A stretch of DNA of 64,000 bases from Vitrella brassicaformis CCMP3155 (GCA_001179505.1 CDMY01000400.1:22599-86598), one strand, 5' to 3'; shown: positions 2,273-63,237, counted from the stretch's first letter. The notes: a model not told the origin generated them from the sequence alone. Translations and numbers: made by a program.

Positions 2273-2668
2273 NNNNNNNNNNNNNNNNNNNNNNNNNNNN
2301 NNNNNNNNNNNNNNNNNNNNNNNNNNNNNNNNNNNNNNNNNNNNNNNNNNNNNNNNNNNNNNNNNNNNNNNNNNNNNNNNNNNNNNNNNNNNNNNNNNNN
2401 NNNNNNNNNNNNNNNNNNNNNNNNNNNNNNNNNNNNNNNNNNNNNNNNNNNNNNNNNNNNNNNNNNNNNNNNNNNNNNNNNNNNNNNNNNNNNNNNNNNN
2501 NNNNNNNNNNNNNNNNNNNNNNNNNNNNNNNNNNNNNNNNNNNNNNNNNNNNNNNNNNNNNNNNNNNNNNNNCCCCTCCCGGGCCCCACCAGAACAGTCA
2601 CACACACACACACACACACACTCAGACCTACATTCAGCGACAGAGCAGCGACAAACATGTCGCTGTGT

Positions 2669-3590
2669 CTACTCCCGGCGCAGGTGGCCACCGCAGCGGC
2701 CGTGGCAGTGGATGCAGCAGACGGGCTTGTTGGCGATCCACTGGAGGGTGCCCCTGGCGCAGCGGTGCTGGACGGGAGCGTGGTCGCACCTGATGCAGGT
2801 CTCCTCGTGTGGTCCGACACCCAACGGCGGCGGCAGCTCGTCGCCACGCTTGAACTCAAACCCATCCGGACACGAATGCCTGATCAACAGACACACACAC
2901 AGAGACACACCCATGGGGACGGTGACGGGTGGACGAGCCCTTTCCCGTGTTGCGGTGCTTACAGTCTCTCTGCGAAGTGCTTGGCGACGCACTTGTCGCC
3001 GCTCGGGTGGTAGCCAAAGGGGCACCTGAAGTCAGCCGGGTGCGTACGGGTGATGACGCACACGTGGCGGTGCGCATCGAGAACGCCACGGGGGCAGGAG
3101 GGGTCGCGAGGGGCATACTGGATCCTGCCGGTGAAGGGGCACTTGGTGTAGCACTTGCTGCCGTCGGCTGTCAGCTGGTAGCCGAAGCGGCACCTGTACT
3201 CGGGAGGGCAGGTCTCCTCTGTGATGCACGTGGTCCCCGACAGAGTGGCGTGGGGGTCCCTGCAGAAGGGAGTGCGGTTGGCGTACTGATACAGAACACA
3301 CTGATTGCCCTCAACCACATAGCCCTGACGCACACACACATACACGCAGCCGATGCCTCATGACGTCCTACTGAGTGTGAGTGTTTGTGTACCTGTTTGG
3401 CGCAATAGTAGTGTGGCTCGTGGCGGAATGGCTTGGCGCATTTGTCGTCGAGATGCACGAAGCCGTGTGGGCACTCGGGGAGGGGGTCCTCTCGGATGGG
3501 ACAGAAACCATTCTTGGCCGCTGCGAGGGGCACACAACAGGCCGCCAGGAGAGCCAGCACACACACCGCCACACCGCACTGGGAAATCAT
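2669..3590 (-). CDS. Oocyst-wall-protein-like Cys/His-rich secreted protein, copy 2 (complete, 3 exons)
   Basis: Exons 3590-3393, 3324-2963 and 2879-2669 have GT-AG junctions in compatible phase. Signal peptide MISQCGVAVCVLALLAACCVPLAAA is followed by tandem CPxG-xn-C repeats. Differs from copy 1 by several substitutions (CHTK/CYTK, APRL/AERL). Confidence 0.75.
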
Positions 3591-3953
3591 CTTTGTTCTT
3601 GTCGTTGCAGACAGGAGACCACTGAGGCAGGGATAAGAGAAGGTGGCACGGGAGAGAGGCAGGCGGACGCACAGAGAGATCTGAGTTCGGATGAATTATG
3701 ACGATGGCTGGAAGGATAGATAGAACGGACAGGGAGAGAGAGGCAAAACGGCGGGAGGGGGGAGAGGAGAAAAATCCCTCCCTCCATCCCTCCCTCCTAC
3801 CCTACCCTTAGCCAAGGTATCGTCCCAGATCTTCACTTCCCACCTTCCAGCCTTCCTACTTCCCGCTTCCCTCGGCCTCTCTCTTGGCATCATCACCTTC
3901 ATCCTTCCTCGACGACTTGATCATCGCTCTCTATCGCCCTGTTATCGTCGGCA

Positions 3954-5859
3954 ATGGCTCAGCTTGCGGGAATCGTGTGGACTCTGCTGGTCGCCCTGTC
4001 CCTGGTGGCCAGTCAGCCCTCTGCAAACAAGACGCCCGTGGTTTCCTACAGCACATTCAGCCTGGTGAGTGATGGTGCCGCCAACGACCAGCCGAGTGTC
4101 CGTGCGCTCAGCAGTCCGCCACCGCGTCCAGCTGGTGCAGCTGGCATCCACCGCATAATCGTCAAGCTCAAGCACCCACACACCGAGGGCCTTGCCCGCG
4201 CCGAGACCATCTCGAGGGCACTGCAGGCCTCCCTGTCAGCCGAGACCACCGTGCACACGGCTGAGACGACGGTCCACCACCTCAACAGCTTGTCCATGGA
4301 CGTGGTGGATCTGCCGCTAGGTGTCGATGCAGCGGCCACATGCGAGGCTGCCCTCCTGGCGTCGGATGAGATCGACATCTGCGAGCCGGATGCCGTTGTT
4401 GCGACGGCCTCTGGCCGCAGGCTGCGTGCCCGGGCAGCACAGGAGCCCAACCGCTTCGTGCCCGACGACCCAATCTTCAAGGAGCAGTGGGGGATGGCCA
4501 GCATCGATATGCCCGAGGCGTGGGCCTTCCTGTCTGAGCAGCAGCAGGAGACGGCCAGTGGGGCCGACTCAGTGGGCAAAGGTACGGTGGTCGGGGTGAT
4601 TGACACCGGTGTCGACTACACCCATCCGGACCTCAAGGACGCCATGTGGGTCAATCAAGGCGAGATCGCTGGCAACGGCATCGATGACGACGGTAGGGAT
4701 GCAGGGAGGGAGGGGGGGAGGGAGGGAGGAAGGGACATCCACACACACGATCTGCATGCATTCCTGGGTCTGTATGTGTCTGTGTGCAGGTAACGGCTTT
4801 GTTGATGACATTCACGGCTGGGCCTGGTGCGACGGATCCGAGAACCCGCACATTGGCGACGGCGATCCTATGGATGAGGGTGGCCATGGAACTCACTGTG
4901 CAGGTACCAGAACTCGCCCTCTCTCTTCGCATCATCACCTTGATCCTTCACCGACGACGTGATCACTGTGCAGGTACCATCGCAGCGACTGCCAACAACC
5001 AGGAGGGCATCGCAGGCGTCGCATTTGGCAGAACCAAGATCATAGCACTCAAATTCCTCTGCGGCGAGGTAAGTCGAATAACCATAGGGTCGCGGGGCGC
5101 TCAAATCACATGTCTGTGTGCCCCTACATCAGGATGGTCGGGGTTCCCTTGCTGACGCGGTCCACGCAATCAACTATGCCGTTGCCATGGGGGCCACGCT
5201 AACAAGCAACAGCTGGGGCTACCTTGGGTCTACTGCATACAGGGCGCTCGAGGAGGCCATCAGGGAGGCAGAGGAGGCCGACATGCTGTTCATCGCCGCG
5301 GCTGGCAACGACGACAACGACAATGACGGCCCCAGGAAAGGCTACCCGGCATCATCTGAGCTGGACAGCATCATCAGCGTCGGCGCGGCGACTAGAAATG
5401 GAGAGAAGGCGCCCTTCAGCAACTACGGCCTCGAGAGCGTTGACGTCTTTGCGCCGGGGACGAGAATCTTCTCGACGATGCCCGGTGGCAAGTATGCGGC
5501 AATGGGGGGCACCAGCATGGCAACGCCATTTGTCGCTGGTACGCAAGCACTGAGGACTGCTGTGTGATACCCATTAGACGATCCAATCGACTGTTGGTTT
5601 CTTTGTGACTTCAGGTTTGGCTGCCCTTCTGTGGTCGACGGATCCGGCGCAGAGCTATTGCGACATCAAGCATCGCATTCTGTCGACTTCCGAGAAGATG
5701 GACTCGCTCGAGGGCCTGTGCGTCACGGGGGGCCAGATCAACGCACTGAAGGCCGTCACGTGTGCCGATTGCAAATGGACCCCCACGGAGGAGCCGACGG
5801 CGGCTCCGACGGAAGTTCCCACGCAGGAGCCTACGACGGAGGAGCCGAGTACCCCGTAA
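3954..5859 (+). CDS. Secreted subtilisin-like serine protease (S8), paralog A
   Basis: Exons 3954-4692, 4790-4903, 4974-5068, 5133-5538 and 5615-5859. Contains signal peptide, prodomain, VIDTGVD (Asp), HGTHCAG (His), AAAGND (oxyanion Asn) and GTSMATP (Ser), plus a Thr/Glu/Pro-rich tail (PTEEPTAAPTEVPTQEPT). Confidence 0.95.
4904..4973 (+). other. 70-nt GT-AG intron present only in subtilisin paralog A, flanked by a 17-bp direct repeat
   Basis: tcactgtgcaggtacca occurs at 4893-4909 and 4963-4979. Paralog B (about 50488-50504) has a single copy with no insert. The filler resembles the leader at about 3871-3923 and 49460-49510. Confidence 0.8.
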
Positions 5860-10198: not shown

Positions 10199-13100
10199 AT
10201 GGCGAGGAGGCAGCTCGAGCGCACATACAGGTCTTTCGGGGTGGCATGATGAATGCATCCGCCCGCGTGATGTGATGAATCTGTGGATCTGTTTGTGTGC
10301 AGGGAGGGCATGGCGCCCGAACAGCATATCGATGCTATGCGGGTGCGGACACACAGGCGCACGCACGCAGGAATGACGCACTTTCTTTACGGCGTGTGTG
10401 TGTGTGTGTGCAGGTGAAGCGTAAGGTTGGAGAGCCCCTTGAGAAGCTCAAGGAATTCTCTGAAATCATCAAGATGCTCAACGAGGGGTCTACGGGACTC
10501 GCAGAACGCGTAAGCATGTGCGTGTGCGTGTGTGCGTGTCTTTGGTGGAGATCTACCTGTGTCCAATTGTGCAGATCTATTCCGAGAATGATCATTGTGT
10601 CGAGGAACTGATACAGAACGTCCGGTGAGCTTGAAACCCACACACACGTGTACGCGCATGCGCACGACCGTCGTGTGTGCGGGTGGTGTGACGTATGAGT
10701 GGGCAGCGATGCGCAGCTGAGTCTTTCCGACGGCGAGCTCGGGGACCTGGACATCAGGCTGCTCAAAAGCGACCCGTTCAACGCCATGAATGGTAGACAA
10801 ATACACGGAGGACGGCCATCTCCCATTTGTGTGTGTGTGTGTGTGTGTGTATGCAGTGAAGTTGATCGCCTCTGAGCAGAAGTGCGCATTCCCCCCAGAC
10901 AAGAGTCTGAAGCAGGACAACGGCTGCCTCATCCTCGTAAGTAGCCNNNNNNNNNNNNNNNNNNNNNNNNNNNNNNNNNNNNNNNNNNNNNNNNNNNNNN
11001 NNNNNNNNNNNNNNNNNNNNNNNNNNNNNNNNNNNNNNNNNNNNNNNNNNNNNNNNNNNNNNNNNNNNNNNNNNNNNNNNNNNNNNNNNNNNNNNNNNNN
11101 NNNNNNNNNNNNNNNNNNNNNNNNNNNNNNNNNNNNNNNNNNNNNNNNNNNNNNNNNNNNNNNNNNNNNNNNNNNNNNNNNNNNNNNNNNNNNNNNNNNN
11201 NNNNNNNNNNNNNNNNNNNNNNNNNNNNNNNNNNNNNNNNNNNNNNCATACATTCGTCATGGCTTCAACTCATGGATGGATGGATGGATGGATGGATGCA
11301 GTGCTACAACGAGCGTGGTTTCCGCTGGCAAGATGTCGAGTCCATCTGCTTCATCGGCGAGTCCACCAAAAGGGTACCTACGTACCTCCACGCACGACAC
11401 ACATGACGCGGGCCACGAATGTGTACACGATGGGTATATATGGGTGGTGTGTGGATTGTCCATCGATGTGTGTAGGAGGGGAGCGGCAAGTTCGTTGGCG
11501 AGAAGGGCCAGGGCTTCAAGGCCGTCTTCAACATCGCCAAGTGAGCTGACCGGCCATTCGATTCATGTGTGCGTGGATCCATCCATCCATCCATCCATCC
11601 ATCTGTGTGTGTCTGTGTCCGTGTGTCCGTTGTCAGCTTCGCGTACGTGCTGTCGGACCAGCCTTCGTCGCAGTACTTCTTTCGGCTGCGCGAGCACAAA
11701 CACCCCCTGTGTGGCGTCAAGTACGTATGGCACCACAAACACCATACTCGCCCATGTGTGTGTACACATCCAAGCTGTGTGGGTATGGGCGAAGGTATAT
11801 CGTCCCTGATTACCTGCCGCGCGCATCGCTGCCCGAGGAGGTCACGACCATCATGAAGGGGAGGTATGTGCCGATAGCAATCAATGTGTCCATGCACTCA
11901 CAAATGAATTTGTGTCGCGTGTGGTGTTGCACATGCATACATTCGTCATGGCTTCAACTCATGGATGGATGGATGGATGGATGGATGCAGTGCTACAACG
12001 AGCGTGGTTTCCGCTGGCAAGATGTCGAGTCCATCTGCTTCATCGGCGAGTCCACCAAAAGGGTACCTACGTACCTCCACGCACGACACACATGACGCGG
12101 GCCACGAATGTGTACACGATGGGTATATATGGGTGGTGTGTGGATTGTCCATCGATGTGTGTAGGAGGGGAGCGGCAAGTTCGTTGGCGAGAAGGGCCAG
12201 GGCTTCAAGGCCGTCTTCAACATCGCCAAGTGAGCTGACCGGCCATTCGATTCATGTGTGCGTGGATCCATCCATCCATCCATCCATCCATCTGTGTGTG
12301 TCTGTGTCCGTGTGTCCGTTGTCAGCTTCGCGTACGTGCTGTCGGACCAGCCTTCGTCGCAGTACTTCTTTCGGCTGCGCGAGCACAAACACCCCCTGTG
12401 TGGCGTCAAGTACGTATGGCACCACAAACACCATACTCGCCCATGTGTGTGTACACATCCAAGCTGTGTGGGTATGGGCGAAGGTATATCGTCCCTGATT
12501 ACCTGCCGCGCGCATCGCTGCCCGAGGAGGTCACGACCATCATGAAGGGGAGGTATGTGCCGATAGCAATCAATGTGTCCATGCACTCACAAATGAATTT
12601 GTGTCGCGTGTGGTGTTGGTGTGTGTGTGTGCGTGGGGGGGGNNNNNNNNNNNNNNNNNNNNNNNNNNNNNNNNNNNNNNNNNNNNNNNNNNNNNNNNNN
12701 NNNNNNNNNNNNNNNNNNNNNNNNNNNNNNNNNNNNNNNNNNNNNNNNNNNNNNNNNNNNNNNNNNNNNNNNNNNNNNNNNNNNNNNNNNNNNNNNNNNN
12801 NNNNNNNNNNNNNNNNNNNNNNNNNNNNNNNNNNNNNNNNNNNNNNNNNNNNNNNNNNNNNNNNNNNNNNNNNNNNNNNNNNNNNNNNNNNNNNNNNNNN
12901 NNNNNNNNNNNNNNNNNNNNNNNNNNNNNNNNNNNNNNNNNNGGGGGGGGGGGGGGGGCATACCTGCACACAGGACGTGTTTGTGTCTGTCGATGAAGAA
13001 GGACGACCGCATCGACGCGTACGACATCATACACAAGAAGATCGCCGAGGTGAGTGAGTGTGCCGCGCTGCTCCTCCACTCATCCACAGACACGACCATC

Positions 13101-49105: not shown

Positions 49106-49544
49106 CACAATCGGTCGTTGCAGAAGGAAGACGTGAAGGAAGACGAATGATAGGAAGGAGGGGAGGAAAGATGTGAGCTGCGGACGAAGCAAGGATAAGA
49201 TCTGCGGAGAATGCCGATGCCTGCGTCCTCCCCTGGCCTCCCTGCGTTCCCCTCTTGCCCTAACCCATGGCAAGAAACCTATCGACAGTGGTTTCACAGG
49301 GAGTTGAGAGTTAGGGGAGGGAGGGAGGGAGGGGGAGGGAGGGAGGGCTTCCTCTCCATCCCTCCATCCATCCCTCTATCTATCCCTCCATCGGTCAGGC
49401 AAGGTATCGTCCCAGATCTTCACTTCCCACCTTCCACCCTACCTACTTCCCGCTTCCCACGCCCTCTCTCTTCGCATCATCACCGTCATCCTTCACCGAC
49501 GACTTGATCATCGCTCTCTATCGTCTTGTTATTCACTGTCGGCA

Positions 49545-51387
49545 ATGGCTCAGCTTGCGGGAATCGTGTGGACTCTGCTGGTCGCCCTGTCCCTGGTGGC
49601 CTGTCAGCCCTCTGCAAACAAGACGCCCGTGGTTTCCTACAGCACATTCAGCCTGGTGAGTGATGGAGCCGCCAACGACCAGCCGAGTGTCCGTGCGCTC
49701 AGCAGTCCGCCACCGCGTCCAGCTGCTGCAGCTGGCATCCACCGCATCATCGTCAAGCTCAAGCACCCACACACCGAGGGCCTTGCCCGCGCAGAGACCA
49801 TCTCGAGGGCACTGCAGGCCTCCATGTCAGCCGAGACCACCGTGCACACGGCTGAGACGACGGTCCACCACCTCAACAGCTTGTCCATGGACGTGGTGGA
49901 TCTGCCGCTAGGTGTCGATGCAGCGGCCACATGCGAGGCTGCCCTCCTGGCGTCGGATGAGATCGACATCTGCGAGCCGGATGCCGTTGTTGCGACGGCC
50001 TCTGGCCGAAGGCTGCGCGCCCGGGCAGCACAGGAGCCCAACCGCTTCGTGCCCGACGACCCAATCTTCAAGGAGCAGTGGGGGATGGCCAGCATCGATA
50101 TGCCCGAGGCGTGGGCCTTCCTGTCTGAGCAGCAGCAGGAGACGGACAGTGGGGCCGACTCAGTGGGCAAAGGTACGGTGGTCGGGGTGATTGACACCGG
50201 TGTCGACTACACCCATCCGGACCTCAAGGACGCCATGTGGGTCAATCAAGGCGAGATCGTTGGCAACGGCATCGATGACGACGGTAGGTCCCGAGGGAGG
50301 GAGGGAGGGAGGGAGGATGCAGGAAGAGACATTCACACACACGATCTGCATGCATTCCTTGGTCTGTATGTGTCTGTGTGCAGGTAACGGCTTTGTTGAT
50401 GACATTCACGGCTGGGCCTGGTGCGACGGATCCGAGAACCCGCACATTGGCGACGGCGATCCTATGGATGAGGGTGGCCATGGAACTCACTGTGCAGGTA
50501 CCATCGCGGCGACTGCCAACAACCAGGAGGGCATCGCAGGCGTCGCATTTGGCAGAACCAAGATCATGGCACTCAAATTCCTCTGCGGCGAGGTAGGTCG
50601 AGTAAACATAGGGGCGCGGGGCGCTGAAATCACATGTCTGTGTGCGGCTACATCAGGATGGTCGGGGTTACACTGCTGACGCGGTCCACGCAATCAACTA
50701 TGCCGTTGCCATGGGGGCCACGCTCACAAGCAACAGCTGGGGCTCCCTTGGGTCTAGAGCACATCCAGGGCTCGAGGAGGCCATCAGGAAGGCAGAGGAG
50801 GCGAACATGCTTTTCGTCGCCGCGGCTGGCAACGACGACAACGACAATGACGGCCCCAGGAAAGGCTACCCGGCATCATCTGAGCTGGACAGCGTCATCA
50901 GCGTCGGCGCGTCGAATAAGGAAGGAGAGAAGGCGTGGTTCAGCAACTACGGCCTCGAGAGCGCTGACGTGTTTGCGCCGGGGACGAGAATCGCCTCGAC
51001 GATGCCCGGTGGCAAGTATGCGAAAATGCAGGGCACCAGCATGGCAACGCCATTCGTTGCTGGTACGCAAGCACTGAGGACTGCAGTCTGTGTGATACCC
51101 ATTAGACGATCCACTCAATCGCTGCTTTGTCTGTGACTTCAGGTTTGGCTGCCCTTCTGTGGTCGACGGATCCGGCGCAGAGCTATCGCGACATCAAGCA
51201 TCGCATTCTGTCGACTTCCGAGAAGATGGACTCGCTCGAGGGCCTGTGCGTCACGGGGGGCCAGGTCAACGCACTGAAGGCCGTCACGTGTGCCGATTGC
51301 AAATGGACCCCCACGGAGGAGCCGACGGCGGCTCCGACGGAAGCCCCCACGCAGGAGCCTACGACGGAGGAGCCGGGGACCCCGTAA
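49545..51387 (+). CDS. Secreted subtilisin-like serine protease (S8), paralog B
   Basis: Exons 49545-50283, 50384-50592, 50657-51062 and 51143-51387. Intact D/H/N/S motifs; lacks the extra intron seen in paralog A. Confidence 0.95.
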
Positions 51388-59071: not shown

Positions 59072-62000
59072 TCACGCCCTGTGCATGGGTGTGGTGCCGG
59101 TGTCGCCCGCGAGCGCCTTGTTCCTGGTCATCAGGAAGGCGGGGAAGCCCTCCTCGGCCTCGGTGTCCAGGTCGATCAGCTTCATGATGGTGTCATGGAT
59201 CGTCTTGGCGTACTTCTGGGCCAGCGAACGGGACACAAAGTTGGAGGCATACTGAACAACACACAGAGCGAGAAAGAGAAAGAGAAGAGGAGGAAGTGCG
59301 GGTACAGAACAAAACGGGTGTGTGTAGTGTGTCCGTTGCTCACCTGCAGCGACCAGTTGAGTCTGCCCGAGATGGTGACCAGGTTGTGCGAGAAGAGGTT
59401 GTTGCCCACGCCGTGCTGGCTCACGCACGACCAGCTGCTCTCGATCTCCATCTCGAAGTCGCCGCCGCCCCTCACCTCGCTGTCGCTGTCACTGCCGCTG
59501 TCCATGTTGTCGACGTGCTCGTGCAGGATCGACCGAGGCGAGTCGATCGACGTGTGGACGATGGTGGGGGTGCGGGGGTAGCGCGACAGCCCGGCCAGCA
59601 TGGTCGGCTTGCGGGGGCCGCGAGCCGACGCGCCGTTGCCCTTGCGCAGATCCGTCGTGTCCCAGTTGCCCGTATTCTGAAAATCACAACACACACATCA
59701 ATGTTGCGAGGGATGGAGGGGTGCGTGTGTGTTTCCTCGCGTACCGAGATGAGGAACACCGAAGGGCGTGGCTTGGGGGCCAAGAGCTCGAGCATGTTGT
59801 CCAGCCGCTCGCTCTCCATGTTGTTCTTGAGGAACTTGGTCACCACGTCCCAGTCGGAGCATGCGTTGGTCGGGGTCGGCCGGTCCACCTTGCTGTGGAT
59901 GCTCGTGTTGACCGTCGACGCAAACTGCCAGAAATGGTCAGCGCGGGTCGAGTGGGCCGGCACCTCCAGACCCAGGCCCATCAGACAGGTGAAGCACCCC
60001 AGACGCGGCAGCCCGTCGGCCTTGGGGGCCGGCTTGTCGCTCTTGACGTCGGCAACGGCAGGGGCGAGGGCGGGGATGCGGGGAGGGGCGCCGAGACCGC
60101 CCCTGCACGACGAGGGGCTGAGCAGCGATGGGCTGAGGTGGCTGAGGACGTCCGGGTGGCTGTCCTGCTTGTCGATGGGCAGGAGGGGGGGCGAGGGGGG
60201 CGAGTGTGAGGGCGGGAGGGGGGAGGGAGGGGGCGTGGGGTTGGTCGACGTCTTGCTCTCGGTGCGAAGGGGGGGCGGCTTGTCCTTTATGGCCTTCTGC
60301 ATCCACCTGCGTGTGGAGATGGCCTGGGTGGTGTAGAGGGAGGTCTTCTGGTCCTCCTTGCCGATCAGCTGGGCGGCAGCAGAGGCGGCCGTGGCGGTCA
60401 GCACCGAGTTGAGGGGGATGTTGTGCTGCTTGCACGTCTGGATGAACTTCTTGGTCGTCGACGGATCGAACAACAGAGGCACTATCGATGTGTGCGCAGC
60501 CTACACAACACACACAGGAAGAGAATGGACGGATGCTAATGCGTTGTGACCCCCCTTCCCCCCCTCTCCCTCCCTCCGTCCCTCGCTTCACTTCACTCGC
60601 CTCACCTGCTGCCTGTCCCTGTAGTGCTCAGCGGGGTACATGACGGAGAAGGGGTTCCTCTTCTTGACCATCAGCTTGCGGAAGAACATCGTCAGGCCCT
60701 TGCCGATCTGGAAGGCCACCTCGTCACTCACTGCGTAGATCGGCTTCGTCAGGGCGTCCAAAAGCGTCCCAGGCATCACGGACGACACCGGCGGCGGCAG
60801 CGACTCACTCACGGGCCCCCCCATGAAGGTGTTGTCGGCCATCGAGGGGAGTTCAGGGAGCGATTCCAGCGATGCGATGGTCGACGCGGAGGCGAACATG
60901 TGCAGAGGGGGAGGGGAGGTGCGGTGGGGGTTGCGGCGCTGGGCGAGGGTGTAGATGGTGTTGAGGAAGTCCTTCCAGAAGTTCTGCCGCGCCAGGCCGT
61001 CCATGATGAGGTGGTGGAAGATGCCTACGATCCACGTCCGGTACGATGGGTACAGCACCGAACCCTGCGCACATCAAGACACACCAGCACCAGACGCAGC
61101 GATGGTGCAAGGGATCGTCCGCAAATGTGTGTCCGAGTGAGGTGGGTTACCCTTCTGATTTTCTGAGTGGTGGGTGTGGCCTGGAGCACTCTCATTCTCC
61201 AGAGAGGCCCCGTAGTGGTGGGCAGGGGGTAGTTCTGCTCATAGCGGAGGAGCTCCTCCCAATCGCTACACTGAGACATCTCTATGTCTGCACACAACAC
61301 ACACAGATAAGCCAAACATTGAGCACACAATGCGAGCTTGTTTCAATCTCTCTCCTTCTCCCTTCTCTCATTCTCCCTTTCTCCTCCCGGCTGTCTCGCT
61401 GTGCGTGTCTTTCGTCTTACCAGGCTCGTGGTGAGTCTCTGCCCATCTGCGCCTAATGCGCCCCCTGTGCTTGTCGACCAGGACCCTGGCGCGCAGAGCG
61501 GCGNNNNNNNNNNNNNNNNNNNNNNNNNNNNNNNNNNNNNNNNNNNNNNNNNNNNNNNNNNNNNNNNNNNNNNNNNNNNNNNNNNNNNNNNNNNNNNNNN
61601 NNNNNNNNNNNNNNNNNNNNNNNNNNNNNNNNNNNNNNNNNNNNNNNNNNNNNNNNNNNNNNNNNNNNNNNNNNNNNNNNNNNNNNNNNNNNNNNNNNNN
61701 NNNNNNNNNNNNNNNNNNNNNNNNNNNNNNNNNNNNNNNNNNNNNNNNNNNNNNNNNNNNNNNNNNNNNNNNNNNNNNNNNNNNNNNNNNNNNNNNNNNN
61801 NNNGCCGATCAGCTGGGCGGCAGCAGAGGCGGCCGTGGCGGTCAGCACCGAGTTGAGGGGGATGTTGTGCTGCTTGCACGTCTGGATGAACTTCTTGGTC
61901 GTCGACGGATCGAACAACAGAGGCACTATCGATGTGTGCGCAGCCTACACAACACACACAGGAAGAGAATGGACGGATGCTAATGCGTTGTGACCCCCCT

Positions 62001-63237
62001 TCCCCCCCTCTCCCTCCCTCCGTCCCTCGCTTCACTTCACTCGCCTCACCTGCTGCCTGTCCCTGTAGTGCTCAGCGGGGTACATGACGGAGAAGGGGTT
62101 CCTCTTCTTGACCATCAGCTTGCGGAAGAACATCGTCAGGCCCTTGCCGATCTGGAAGGCCACCTCGTCACTCACTGCGTAGATCGGCTTCGTCAGGGCG
62201 TCCAAAAGCGTCCCAGGCATCACGGACGACACCGGCGGCGGCAGCGACTCACTCACGGGCCCCCCCATGAAGGTGTTGTCGGCCATCGAGGGGAGTTCAG
62301 GGAGCGATTCCAGCGATGCGATGGTCGACGCGGAGGCGAACATGTGCAGAGGGGGAGGGGAGGTGCGGTGGGGGTTGCGGCGCTGGGCGAGGGTGTAGAT
62401 GGTGTTGAGGAAGTCCTTCCAGAAGTTCTGCCGCGCCAGGCCGTCCATGATGAGGTGGTGGAAGATGCCTACGATCCACGTCCGGTACGATGGGTACAGC
62501 ACCGAACCCTGCGCACATCAAGACACACCAGCACCAGACGCAGCGATGGTGCAAGGGATCGTCCGCAAATGTGTGTCCGAGTGAGGTGGGTTACCCTTCT
62601 GATTTTCTGAGTGGTGGGTGTGGCCTGGAGCACTCTCATTCTCCAGAGAGGCCCCGTAGTGGTGGGCAGGGGGTAGTTCTGCTCATAGCGGAGGAGCTCC
62701 TCCCAATCGCTACACTGAGACATCTCTATGTCTGCACACAACACACACAGATAAGCCAAACATTGAGCACACAATGCGAGCTTGTTTCAATCTCTCTCCT
62801 TCTCCCTTCTCTCATTCTCCCTTTCTCCTCCCGGCTGTCTCGCTGTGCGTGTCTTTCGTCTTACCAGGCTCGTGGTGAGTCTCTGCCCATCTGCGCCTAA
62901 TGCGCCCCCTGTGCTTGTCGACCAGGACCCTGGCGCGCAGAGCGGCGTGTCGCGCCATGAGCATCCTGCCGGCCTCCTTCATGTCCTCGAGGTGAAAGGG
63001 CTGGCTCGTGATGATACTGATGGCGTTCTGGATGAAGAGCGGCCGCTGGAGCTTGACACCGGCGGTGTGGAGGATGTCCCAGTTCTGCTCCCAGTTGTCC
63101 AGCTCTCTGCCGAAGCCATGCTCGTCCACCTCGCGTGGGGAGGAGGGGGGGAGGGGGGTGGGATGGGGGGTGCCGTCAGGCGCCAACAGGATCTCCTGCT
63201 CGTCCACCTTGGTGGGGCGGGCGCAGCACGTCAACAT
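59072..63237 (-). CDS. CoA-dependent acyltransferase (condensation-domain / alcohol acetyltransferase-like), containing an artefactual internal duplication
   Basis: GRELDNWEQ...LMARHAALRARV; GPLWRMRVL; IVGIFHHLIMDG (HHxxxDG); TCKQHNIPLNSVLTA; FWQFA; LISNTGNW; HNLVTISGRLNWSLQY. Confidence 0.8.
60360..62947. repeat. Exact ~1.14-kb direct duplication (offset 1444) either side of a gap (probable assembly artefact)
   Basis: 60360-61503 matches 61804-62947; the ORFs are identical at +1444. Confidence 0.85.

Follow-up and report, generated by a model that had tools for sequence, protein, structure and literature searches.

A 70-nt intron in a Vitrella brassicaformis subtilase gene made of duplicated exon sequence and a copied 5′ leader of the gene family

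Introduction

How new spliceosomal introns arise has long been asked, and most young introns have no known source sequence (PMC4202315). Among the closest described systems, the creation of introns by tandem duplication of an exon segment with AGGT in it—the Rogers model—has been shown in vivo, and neo-introns derived from mitochondrial DNA have been described in Bigelowiella and Daphnia (PMC3443670). Repair of staggered double-strand breaks is in turn an established model for the neo-introns of Daphnia and for others (PMC3443670; PMC4202315). The intron described in this report, found in a gene for a subtilisin-type protease that we call paralog A, belongs with the intron gains ascribed to double-strand-break repair. 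It comes from Vitrella, a compact, intron-rich relative of apicomplexans, and our literature search found no paper on intron gain in this organism.

Materials and methods

Positions are counted from the first letter of the window, i.e. the whole 64-kb stretch of DNA that was analysed, which belongs to an 86.6-kb scaffold of the Vitrella brassicaformis CCMP3155 assembly GCA_001179505.1. The gene family was recovered by a profile-free search with exon 1 of paralog A, which led to one close relative (P0001) that was then used as query; the members recovered in this way were all annotated proteins of V. brassicaformis CCMP3155. Six further family loci (L001 to L006) were compared beside paralogs A and B. 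The RNA and DNA evidence consists of bubble-popped Logan contigs of four public runs, referred to as X1, X5, X6 and X10.

Results

The window holds two genes encoding secreted subtilisin-type proteases, paralog A from 3954 (CEM10062.1, or P0151, 532 aa) and paralog B from about 49546 (CEM10084.1), which share the scaffold and each lie within one cassette, duplicated ~45.5 kb apart. Paralog A is a member of the peptidase S8 (subtilase) family, with matches to Pfam PF00082 in exon 1 (1e-05) and exon 4 (1.6e-26) and with visible DTG, HGTH and GTSMA motifs (Asp/His/Ser). Exon 1 gives a 100% BLASTP match to P0151, and the exon model listed in Table 1, which starts at an ATG at 3954 and not at about 3945 as had been noted earlier, translates exactly to that protein. 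Since this model leaves out 4904–4973, the stretch that concerns us here is already annotated as an intron in the public gene model; stranded RNA-seq served as intron evidence for Augustus in the annotation of Vitrella (PMC4501334).

Two features of the surroundings deserve mention. One RNA contig (3536–3930) spans the whole 335-nt gap from the subtilase ATG to the divergent upstream gene, which suggests either that divergent transcripts overlap here or that the 5′ UTR is long. In addition, three pairs of direct duplications lie beside 300-N gaps (60360–61503 and 61804–62947; 11247–11929 and 11936–12618; 1307–2272 and 2578–3535), two of them 100% identical and one 97% identical, and these are likely to be gap-closing artefacts of the draft assembly and not biology.

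Table 1. Coordinates of the features discussed, in window positions
Feature	Position	Strand	Evidence
Segment of A's own leader matching the filler (47/53)	3871..3923	+	alignment
A exon 1 (signal peptide, propeptide, catalytic Asp region)	3954..4692	+	BLASTP, Pfam, exon model
A intron 1, 97 nt, common to the family	4693..4789	+	zero RNA depth in X6 and X10; exon model
A exon 2, with the catalytic-His motif HGTHCAG at its 3′ end	4790..4903	+	exon model
Duplicated exon stretch; repeat copy 1 is 4893–4909	4889..4909	+	sequence comparison
New 70-nt GT..AG intron	4904..4973	+	RNA joint in X6 (depth 56) and X10 (depth 11); removal gives CEM10062.1
GAACTC, left fragment of the second 21-mer; its final CTC is the left microhomology	4910..4915	+	sequence, leader alignment
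Leader-derived patch, 47 nt, pyrimidine-rich, with YTNAY branch-point-like motifs	4916..4962	+	leader alignment
Repeat copy 2; its initial TCA is the right microhomology; acceptor AG at 4972–4973	4963..4979	+	repeat search, leader alignment
A exon 3, carrying A4984 and A5044	4974..5068	+	comparison of family copies
A intron 3, 64 nt	5069..5132	+	joint in X6 and X10
A exon 4, catalytic Ser region	5133..5538	+	Pfam 1.6e-26; exon model
A intron 4, 76 nt	5539..5614	+	joint in X6
A exon 5 with stop codon	5615..5859	+	exon model
B leader matching the filler (48/51)	49460..49510	+	alignment
Empty target site in B (CEM10084.1), single 17-mer	50487..50503	+	sequence comparison

As the initial annotation had noticed, A carries 70 nt immediately after the HGTHCAG codons that are absent from B, and they are bounded by a perfect 17-bp direct repeat, TCACTGTGCAGGTACCA, containing CAG|GT (Table 1). 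The repeat is found once in B, and these three matches compare with 0.05 expected in shuffled sequences; the matches of the repeat and of the filler between its copies are far beyond chance. Throughout the 64-kb window, this pair is the only exact direct repeat (at least 12 nt long, spaced by 40–400 nt) that contains AGGT and is not of low complexity. The duplicated unit is 21 nt long (GAACTCACTGTGCAGGTACCA), not 17 nt, and its second copy is split into GAACTC and TCACTG...CCA by a 47-nt patch that derives from a leader of the gene family. Homology to the leader extends over 4913–4965 and overlaps the exon-derived pieces by 3 nt on each side, with CTC as the left overlap and TCA as the right one. 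The junction between the two 21-mer copies, CCA|GAAC, shows no microhomology, and for this reason the history may have had two steps or may have combined a staggered cut with capture of the filler. In terms of sources, 21–23 of the 70 nt are duplicated exon and 47–51 nt are family 5′ leader. The insert therefore combines a direct repeat of adjacent exon, the mark of intron gain by double-strand-break repair (17/17 perfect, or 21 nt with the split copy), with CTC and TCA borders around a stretch for which a family leader is the template, the mark of microhomology-mediated templated insertion (a TMEJ or MMBIR scar). A structured-RNA reading of the insert can be set aside, its fold not being significant (z-score −1.46).

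The insert has the boundaries of a U2-type GT–AG intron, with GT at 4904–4905 and AG at 4972–4973. Its removal gives HGTHCAGTIAAT and, over the full model, CEM10062.1, which bears out the claim that splicing restores the frame exactly; if the 70 nt are retained, the frame shifts and a stop is reached at 4960–4962, after 303 aa. Two of the runs, X6 and X10, behave as RNA: intron 1 has zero depth, the intron 3 joint is present in both and the intron 4 joint in X6. Contigs of both runs skip exactly 70 nt with a GT..AG joint, at the junction 4903^4974 that had been predicted. Contig 14 of X10 joins exons 2, 3 and 4 with no mismatches over 242 nt, carries A4984, C5020 and A5044 and enters exon 4 in the A form, while contig 28 of X6 joins 4794–4892 to 4963–5043, also with no mismatches. 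Of the eight family copies aligned, A alone has A5044, A4984 is otherwise found only in the divergent copy at L006, and the 31-base words underlying the contigs tie the joined form to A4984. In every run, the 11-nt overlap of the repeat accounts for all depth within 4904–4973, and no RNA contig of X6 or X10 keeps the 70 nt. The remaining exon 1 variant letters of these two runs are all those of another assembled family copy, L004a (CEL99688.1), so the runs fit the assembled strain. On the evidence of these assembled contigs, the A transcript is spliced at 4904–4973.

The intron also resembles its neighbours in length and splice sites. Its length falls inside the 64–97-nt range of the other introns of the gene, its donor GTAC also starts intron 4, and the duplicated exon end, CACTGTGCAG|GTA, is very similar to the acceptor of intron 1, CTGTGTGCAG|GTA. 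Pyrimidines make up 63% of the intron, the same figure as for the leader patch, and YTNAY-like motifs can be seen by eye at 4940–4944 and 4947–4951.

One alternative is that A is a pseudogene with an unspliced insertion and that the joined RNA contigs derive from a twin copy that lacks the insert and is missing from the assembly. This assembly is fragmented, the family counts eight copies or more, and an insert-less DNA form with A4984 does exist in some Vitrella population: the marine sediment metagenome X5, which over window 3644–5743 contains near-identical Vitrella sequence including A-type intron 3 and exon 4, holds an insert-less genomic contig with parts of introns 1 and 3. However, this contig combines A4984 with G5020 and G5044, a combination found in no assembled copy, and is hence another sequence than the one transcribed in X10, whose contig matches A at all the diagnostic letters given above. 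Together with the lack of a retained form among the RNA contigs and a reading frame in A that has no other defect and equals that of the public model, this leaves the pseudogene explanation hardly credible. What the X5 contig does imply is that an unassembled insert-less copy or an insert-less allele exists somewhere, and it may represent a further paralog, a variant of B from another strain, or A itself in an insert-less allelic form.

A second alternative is that the 70 nt are an assembly artefact, absent from the genome and hence from the A mRNA. The assembly does have artefacts elsewhere, in the 100% identical duplications beside N gaps, and the DNA contigs of X1 and X5 leave the interior of the insert uncovered; indeed, 4910–4962 is represented by no contig in the four runs, including X1, a DNA run from the organism itself. 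However, the exon 3 form of B is likewise missing from the contigs though B is assembled, which makes the gap in the interior uninformative, and A-specific single-copy X1 contigs have a depth of 6–8 versus 19–27 for collapsed paralog paths, so that the contig builder can be expected to have dropped the insert path. Moreover, the insert is shorter than a read and does not lie beside a gap, and its leader-like part has one private substitution and a set of states that no assembled leader combines, something that neither an assembler nor a chimeric read could make up. All of this makes an artefact very unlikely. A search for independent assemblies through the ORF across the insert (window:4600–4959) gave no candidates, including from other paralogs, and in a scan that allowed both letters at 4984, no JGI metagenome contig matched the target site.

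Comparison of the paralogs points to a gain in A, as the initial annotation had proposed. The site is empty in five other copies: B, L001 (CEM19546), L002 (CEM19534), L004b (CEL99686.1) and the very divergent L006 (CEM39664). These five, which include the two most divergent copies, keep introns 1, 3 and 4. CAG|GT is present at the site only in A and B, the other copies reading CAG|GG, GTG|GA, CTG|GA or CCG|GC, which indicates that the insertion went into a sequence of the A/B type, in which a proto-splice site was present beforehand. This lineage-specific presence with ancestral absence, and the make-up of the intron from flanking exon and leader, which is that of an insertion, mean that a gain and not a loss is well supported by the comparison. 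An ancestral intron lost precisely from every other paralog, or a mobile introner-type element, would have to account both for this insertion signature and for the five empty copies; we give such readings next to no credence. The introner or transposon variant is further countered by a search of the insert for terminal inverted repeats, which found none, and by the distribution of matches to the patch, which in ~105 kb (the window and the six loci) are confined to family leaders.

Two other copies differ from A in the same region in ways of their own. CEL99686.1 (L004:5874–5958, the same as L005:3956–4040), a more divergent copy, has a paralog-specific intron of ~85 nt, 10 nt downstream of the A site, that reads GTGAGT...(TCTG)n...CATAG and is bordered by ATCG/ATAG; a search for its source in the window and the six loci found no more than matches to the (TCTG)n microsatellite. 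That two gains occurred independently within 10 nt of each other points to a possible hotspot immediately downstream of the catalytic-His codons. At L003 (CEM27074.1 and the next gene), exon 2 with its catalytic His has been lost altogether, and the 3′ part of intron 1 is joined to CCACTGCAGTGGAACG (L003:3820–3846). The arrangement suggests that the stretch between two similar sites of the CTGTGCAGGTA type was deleted. The annotation has two separate short genes at this locus, which is probably a broken copy.

The leader origin of the patch, which the initial annotation had recognised, is confirmed by alignment, with 48 of 51 positions identical between 4915–4965 and the B leader and six mismatches to A's own leader. 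The leader of B, when considered as donor, has to give way as best match to that of L004a: over 53 positions the patch agrees with L004a at 51, with L001 and B at 49 each, and with the present leader of A at 47. L004a (L004:2852–3699, scaffold CDMY01000286) is a truncated copy that retains only the leader and most of exon 1 and diverges after window-equivalent 4631, and it is clearly transcribed, since the exon 1 contigs of both RNA runs carry mostly its letters. Each of the seven known leaders differs from the filler at no fewer than 2 of 53 positions. The patch has one private substitution (T>G at 4959); its other variable states each occur in some paralog, and no surviving leader shows their combination.

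These comparisons also bear on the age of the event, which had been described as intron gain caught in the act. That description does not hold, with the intron present in the public gene model, no retention in the RNA contigs and no surviving leader identical to the patch. On the other hand, the insertion is later than the A/B-type site and its flanking repeats are still perfect. Judged by these sequence features, it is young, yet not brand new, and there is no sign of an ongoing event. Compared with L001 to L004 over 3815–3953, the upstream region of A is itself a mosaic, B-type up to 3869 and with a leader of L001/L003 type from 3886, and A and B diverge by 1.4% in exon 1 and 0% in exon 2 but by ~9% in exon 4, which together show that gene conversion is frequent in the family. 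A's own leader before such a conversion, in cis 1 kb upstream of the site, is therefore a plausible donor of the patch.

Discussion

The most complete explanation of these findings, and one that we regard as probable, is that A contains a spliced U2-type intron, confined to this paralog, that arose through one complex template-switching insertion at CAG|GT. In the course of events that we infer, the insertion site in A would already have read CAG|GT, and a 21-nt piece of exon 2 would have been duplicated in tandem. Within the second 21-mer copy, a patch of 47–51 nt would have been copied, presumably from DNA, with a family 5′ leader as template; the donor would be either A itself, through its earlier leader ~1 kb upstream, or a paralog of the B/CEL99688 type. 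The repair polymerase would have come off the exon template at CTC and gone back to it at TCA, no more than 2 nt from its exit point, during break repair or replication restart, by a pathway of templated repair guided by microhomology (theta-type end joining, SD-MMEJ or MMBIR-like template switching). Donor and acceptor both come from the duplicated CAG|GT, an initial proposal with which the exact spliced model agrees, and the pyrimidine-rich leader copy would have provided an intron-like body. With its splice sites and body supplied in this way, the insertion could have been spliced at once, leaving the protein unchanged. The 21-nt duplication alone would set the AGGT sites 21 nt apart, which is too close for an intron, and it is thus the leader patch that would give the needed length.

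The initial annotation had favoured repair of a staggered break with templated filler. The templated filler stands, since the leader is its template, but a plain 17-nt staggered break fares less well. In that account, a staggered double-strand break of 17 nt would be followed by fill-in of the overhangs and end-joining capture of a free piece of leader DNA or cDNA, possibly a reverse transcript of the 5′ end of some family mRNA. It would explain the perfect 17-bp repeat on both sides of the insert by a model already established for other neo-introns, and the filler has the sense orientation and stems from a leader that is transcribed (contig 24 of X6 covers that of A). However, an overhang of 17 nt exceeds the 4–12-bp repeats known for this mechanism (PMC4202315), and the account leaves over both the extra GAAC, four more bases identical to the sequence upstream of the repeat, and the CTC and TCA border overlaps. 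The RNA contigs are also unbroken over 3536–3930 and show no 5′ end at 3871. We therefore consider a staggered break unlikely: a 21-nt duplication with 3-nt microhomologies is better accommodated by template switching than by a 17-nt staggered cut.

It is also conceivable, although we think it quite improbable, that the patch was copied directly from RNA during repair of a break in exon 2, with A's own or a sister transcript as template, run-off at or near its 5′ end and a switch back to the exon, and that the insert-less copy with A4984 is the pre-insertion allele. If so, the mRNA leader of the gene itself would have seeded a new intron, and this intron would still be segregating in wild Vitrella. 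The patch is in sense orientation and lies in a transcribed region. The RNA contig over 3536–3930, which could merge the transcript of the divergent neighbour, runs on past 3871, where homology to the filler starts, and with contigs continuous upstream of this position no transcript end is shown where the homology begins; clustered molecule ends were looked for in the RNA contigs, and none were reported.

Template switching on DNA remains the reading that we prefer. The significance of the intron lies in its resolution: every base of a working intron can be assigned to an identified source, and the scar would record the template switches of the polymerase. The case suggests how one accident of repair at an AGGT motif could give rise to an instantly spliced intron, since a pyrimidine-rich leader resembles an intron body. 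The Vitrella sequence in X5 further indicates that wild populations are open to sampling for presence or absence of the intron.

How does this intron compare with those described before? It shares with the Daphnia neo-introns a lineage-specific presence, a direct repeat of adjacent exon at its flanks, a body unrelated to other introns and an unchanged protein. It differs from them in three respects: its repeat is 17–21 bp long versus 4–12 bp in Daphnia (PMC4202315); the source of its body is a family 5′ leader, whereas most Daphnia sources are unknown; and its patch has microhomology at the borders and interrupts a split copy, which points to template switching and not to fill-in and ligation. 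As in the tandem-duplication (AGGT) model, the splice sites are the original and the duplicated exonic AGGT and the message is restored exactly, but only 21–23 of the 70 nt are duplicated exon, and a pure tandem-duplication intron is rejected because the other 47 nt come from the leader. As with neo-introns derived from mitochondrial DNA, traceable cellular DNA, inserted at what was presumably a break, became an intron; here, however, the donor is nuclear, an untranslated leader of the same family and possibly of the same gene 1 kb upstream. The closest parallel in the scar itself is with theta-mediated end joining and MMBIR, in which short microhomologies also mark the switch points and local and ectopic copying are combined, and with which the return to the original template at most 2 nt from the exit agrees (PMC7165422, PMC8421209). 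Theta-type inserts, unlike this one, are typically shorter and copied from within ~100 bp, and the pathway in A is read from the scar alone. The intron of paralog A is, in sum, a new and unusually well-resolved example of an already known type of event, with a nuclear 5′ leader of the same gene family among its identified sources.
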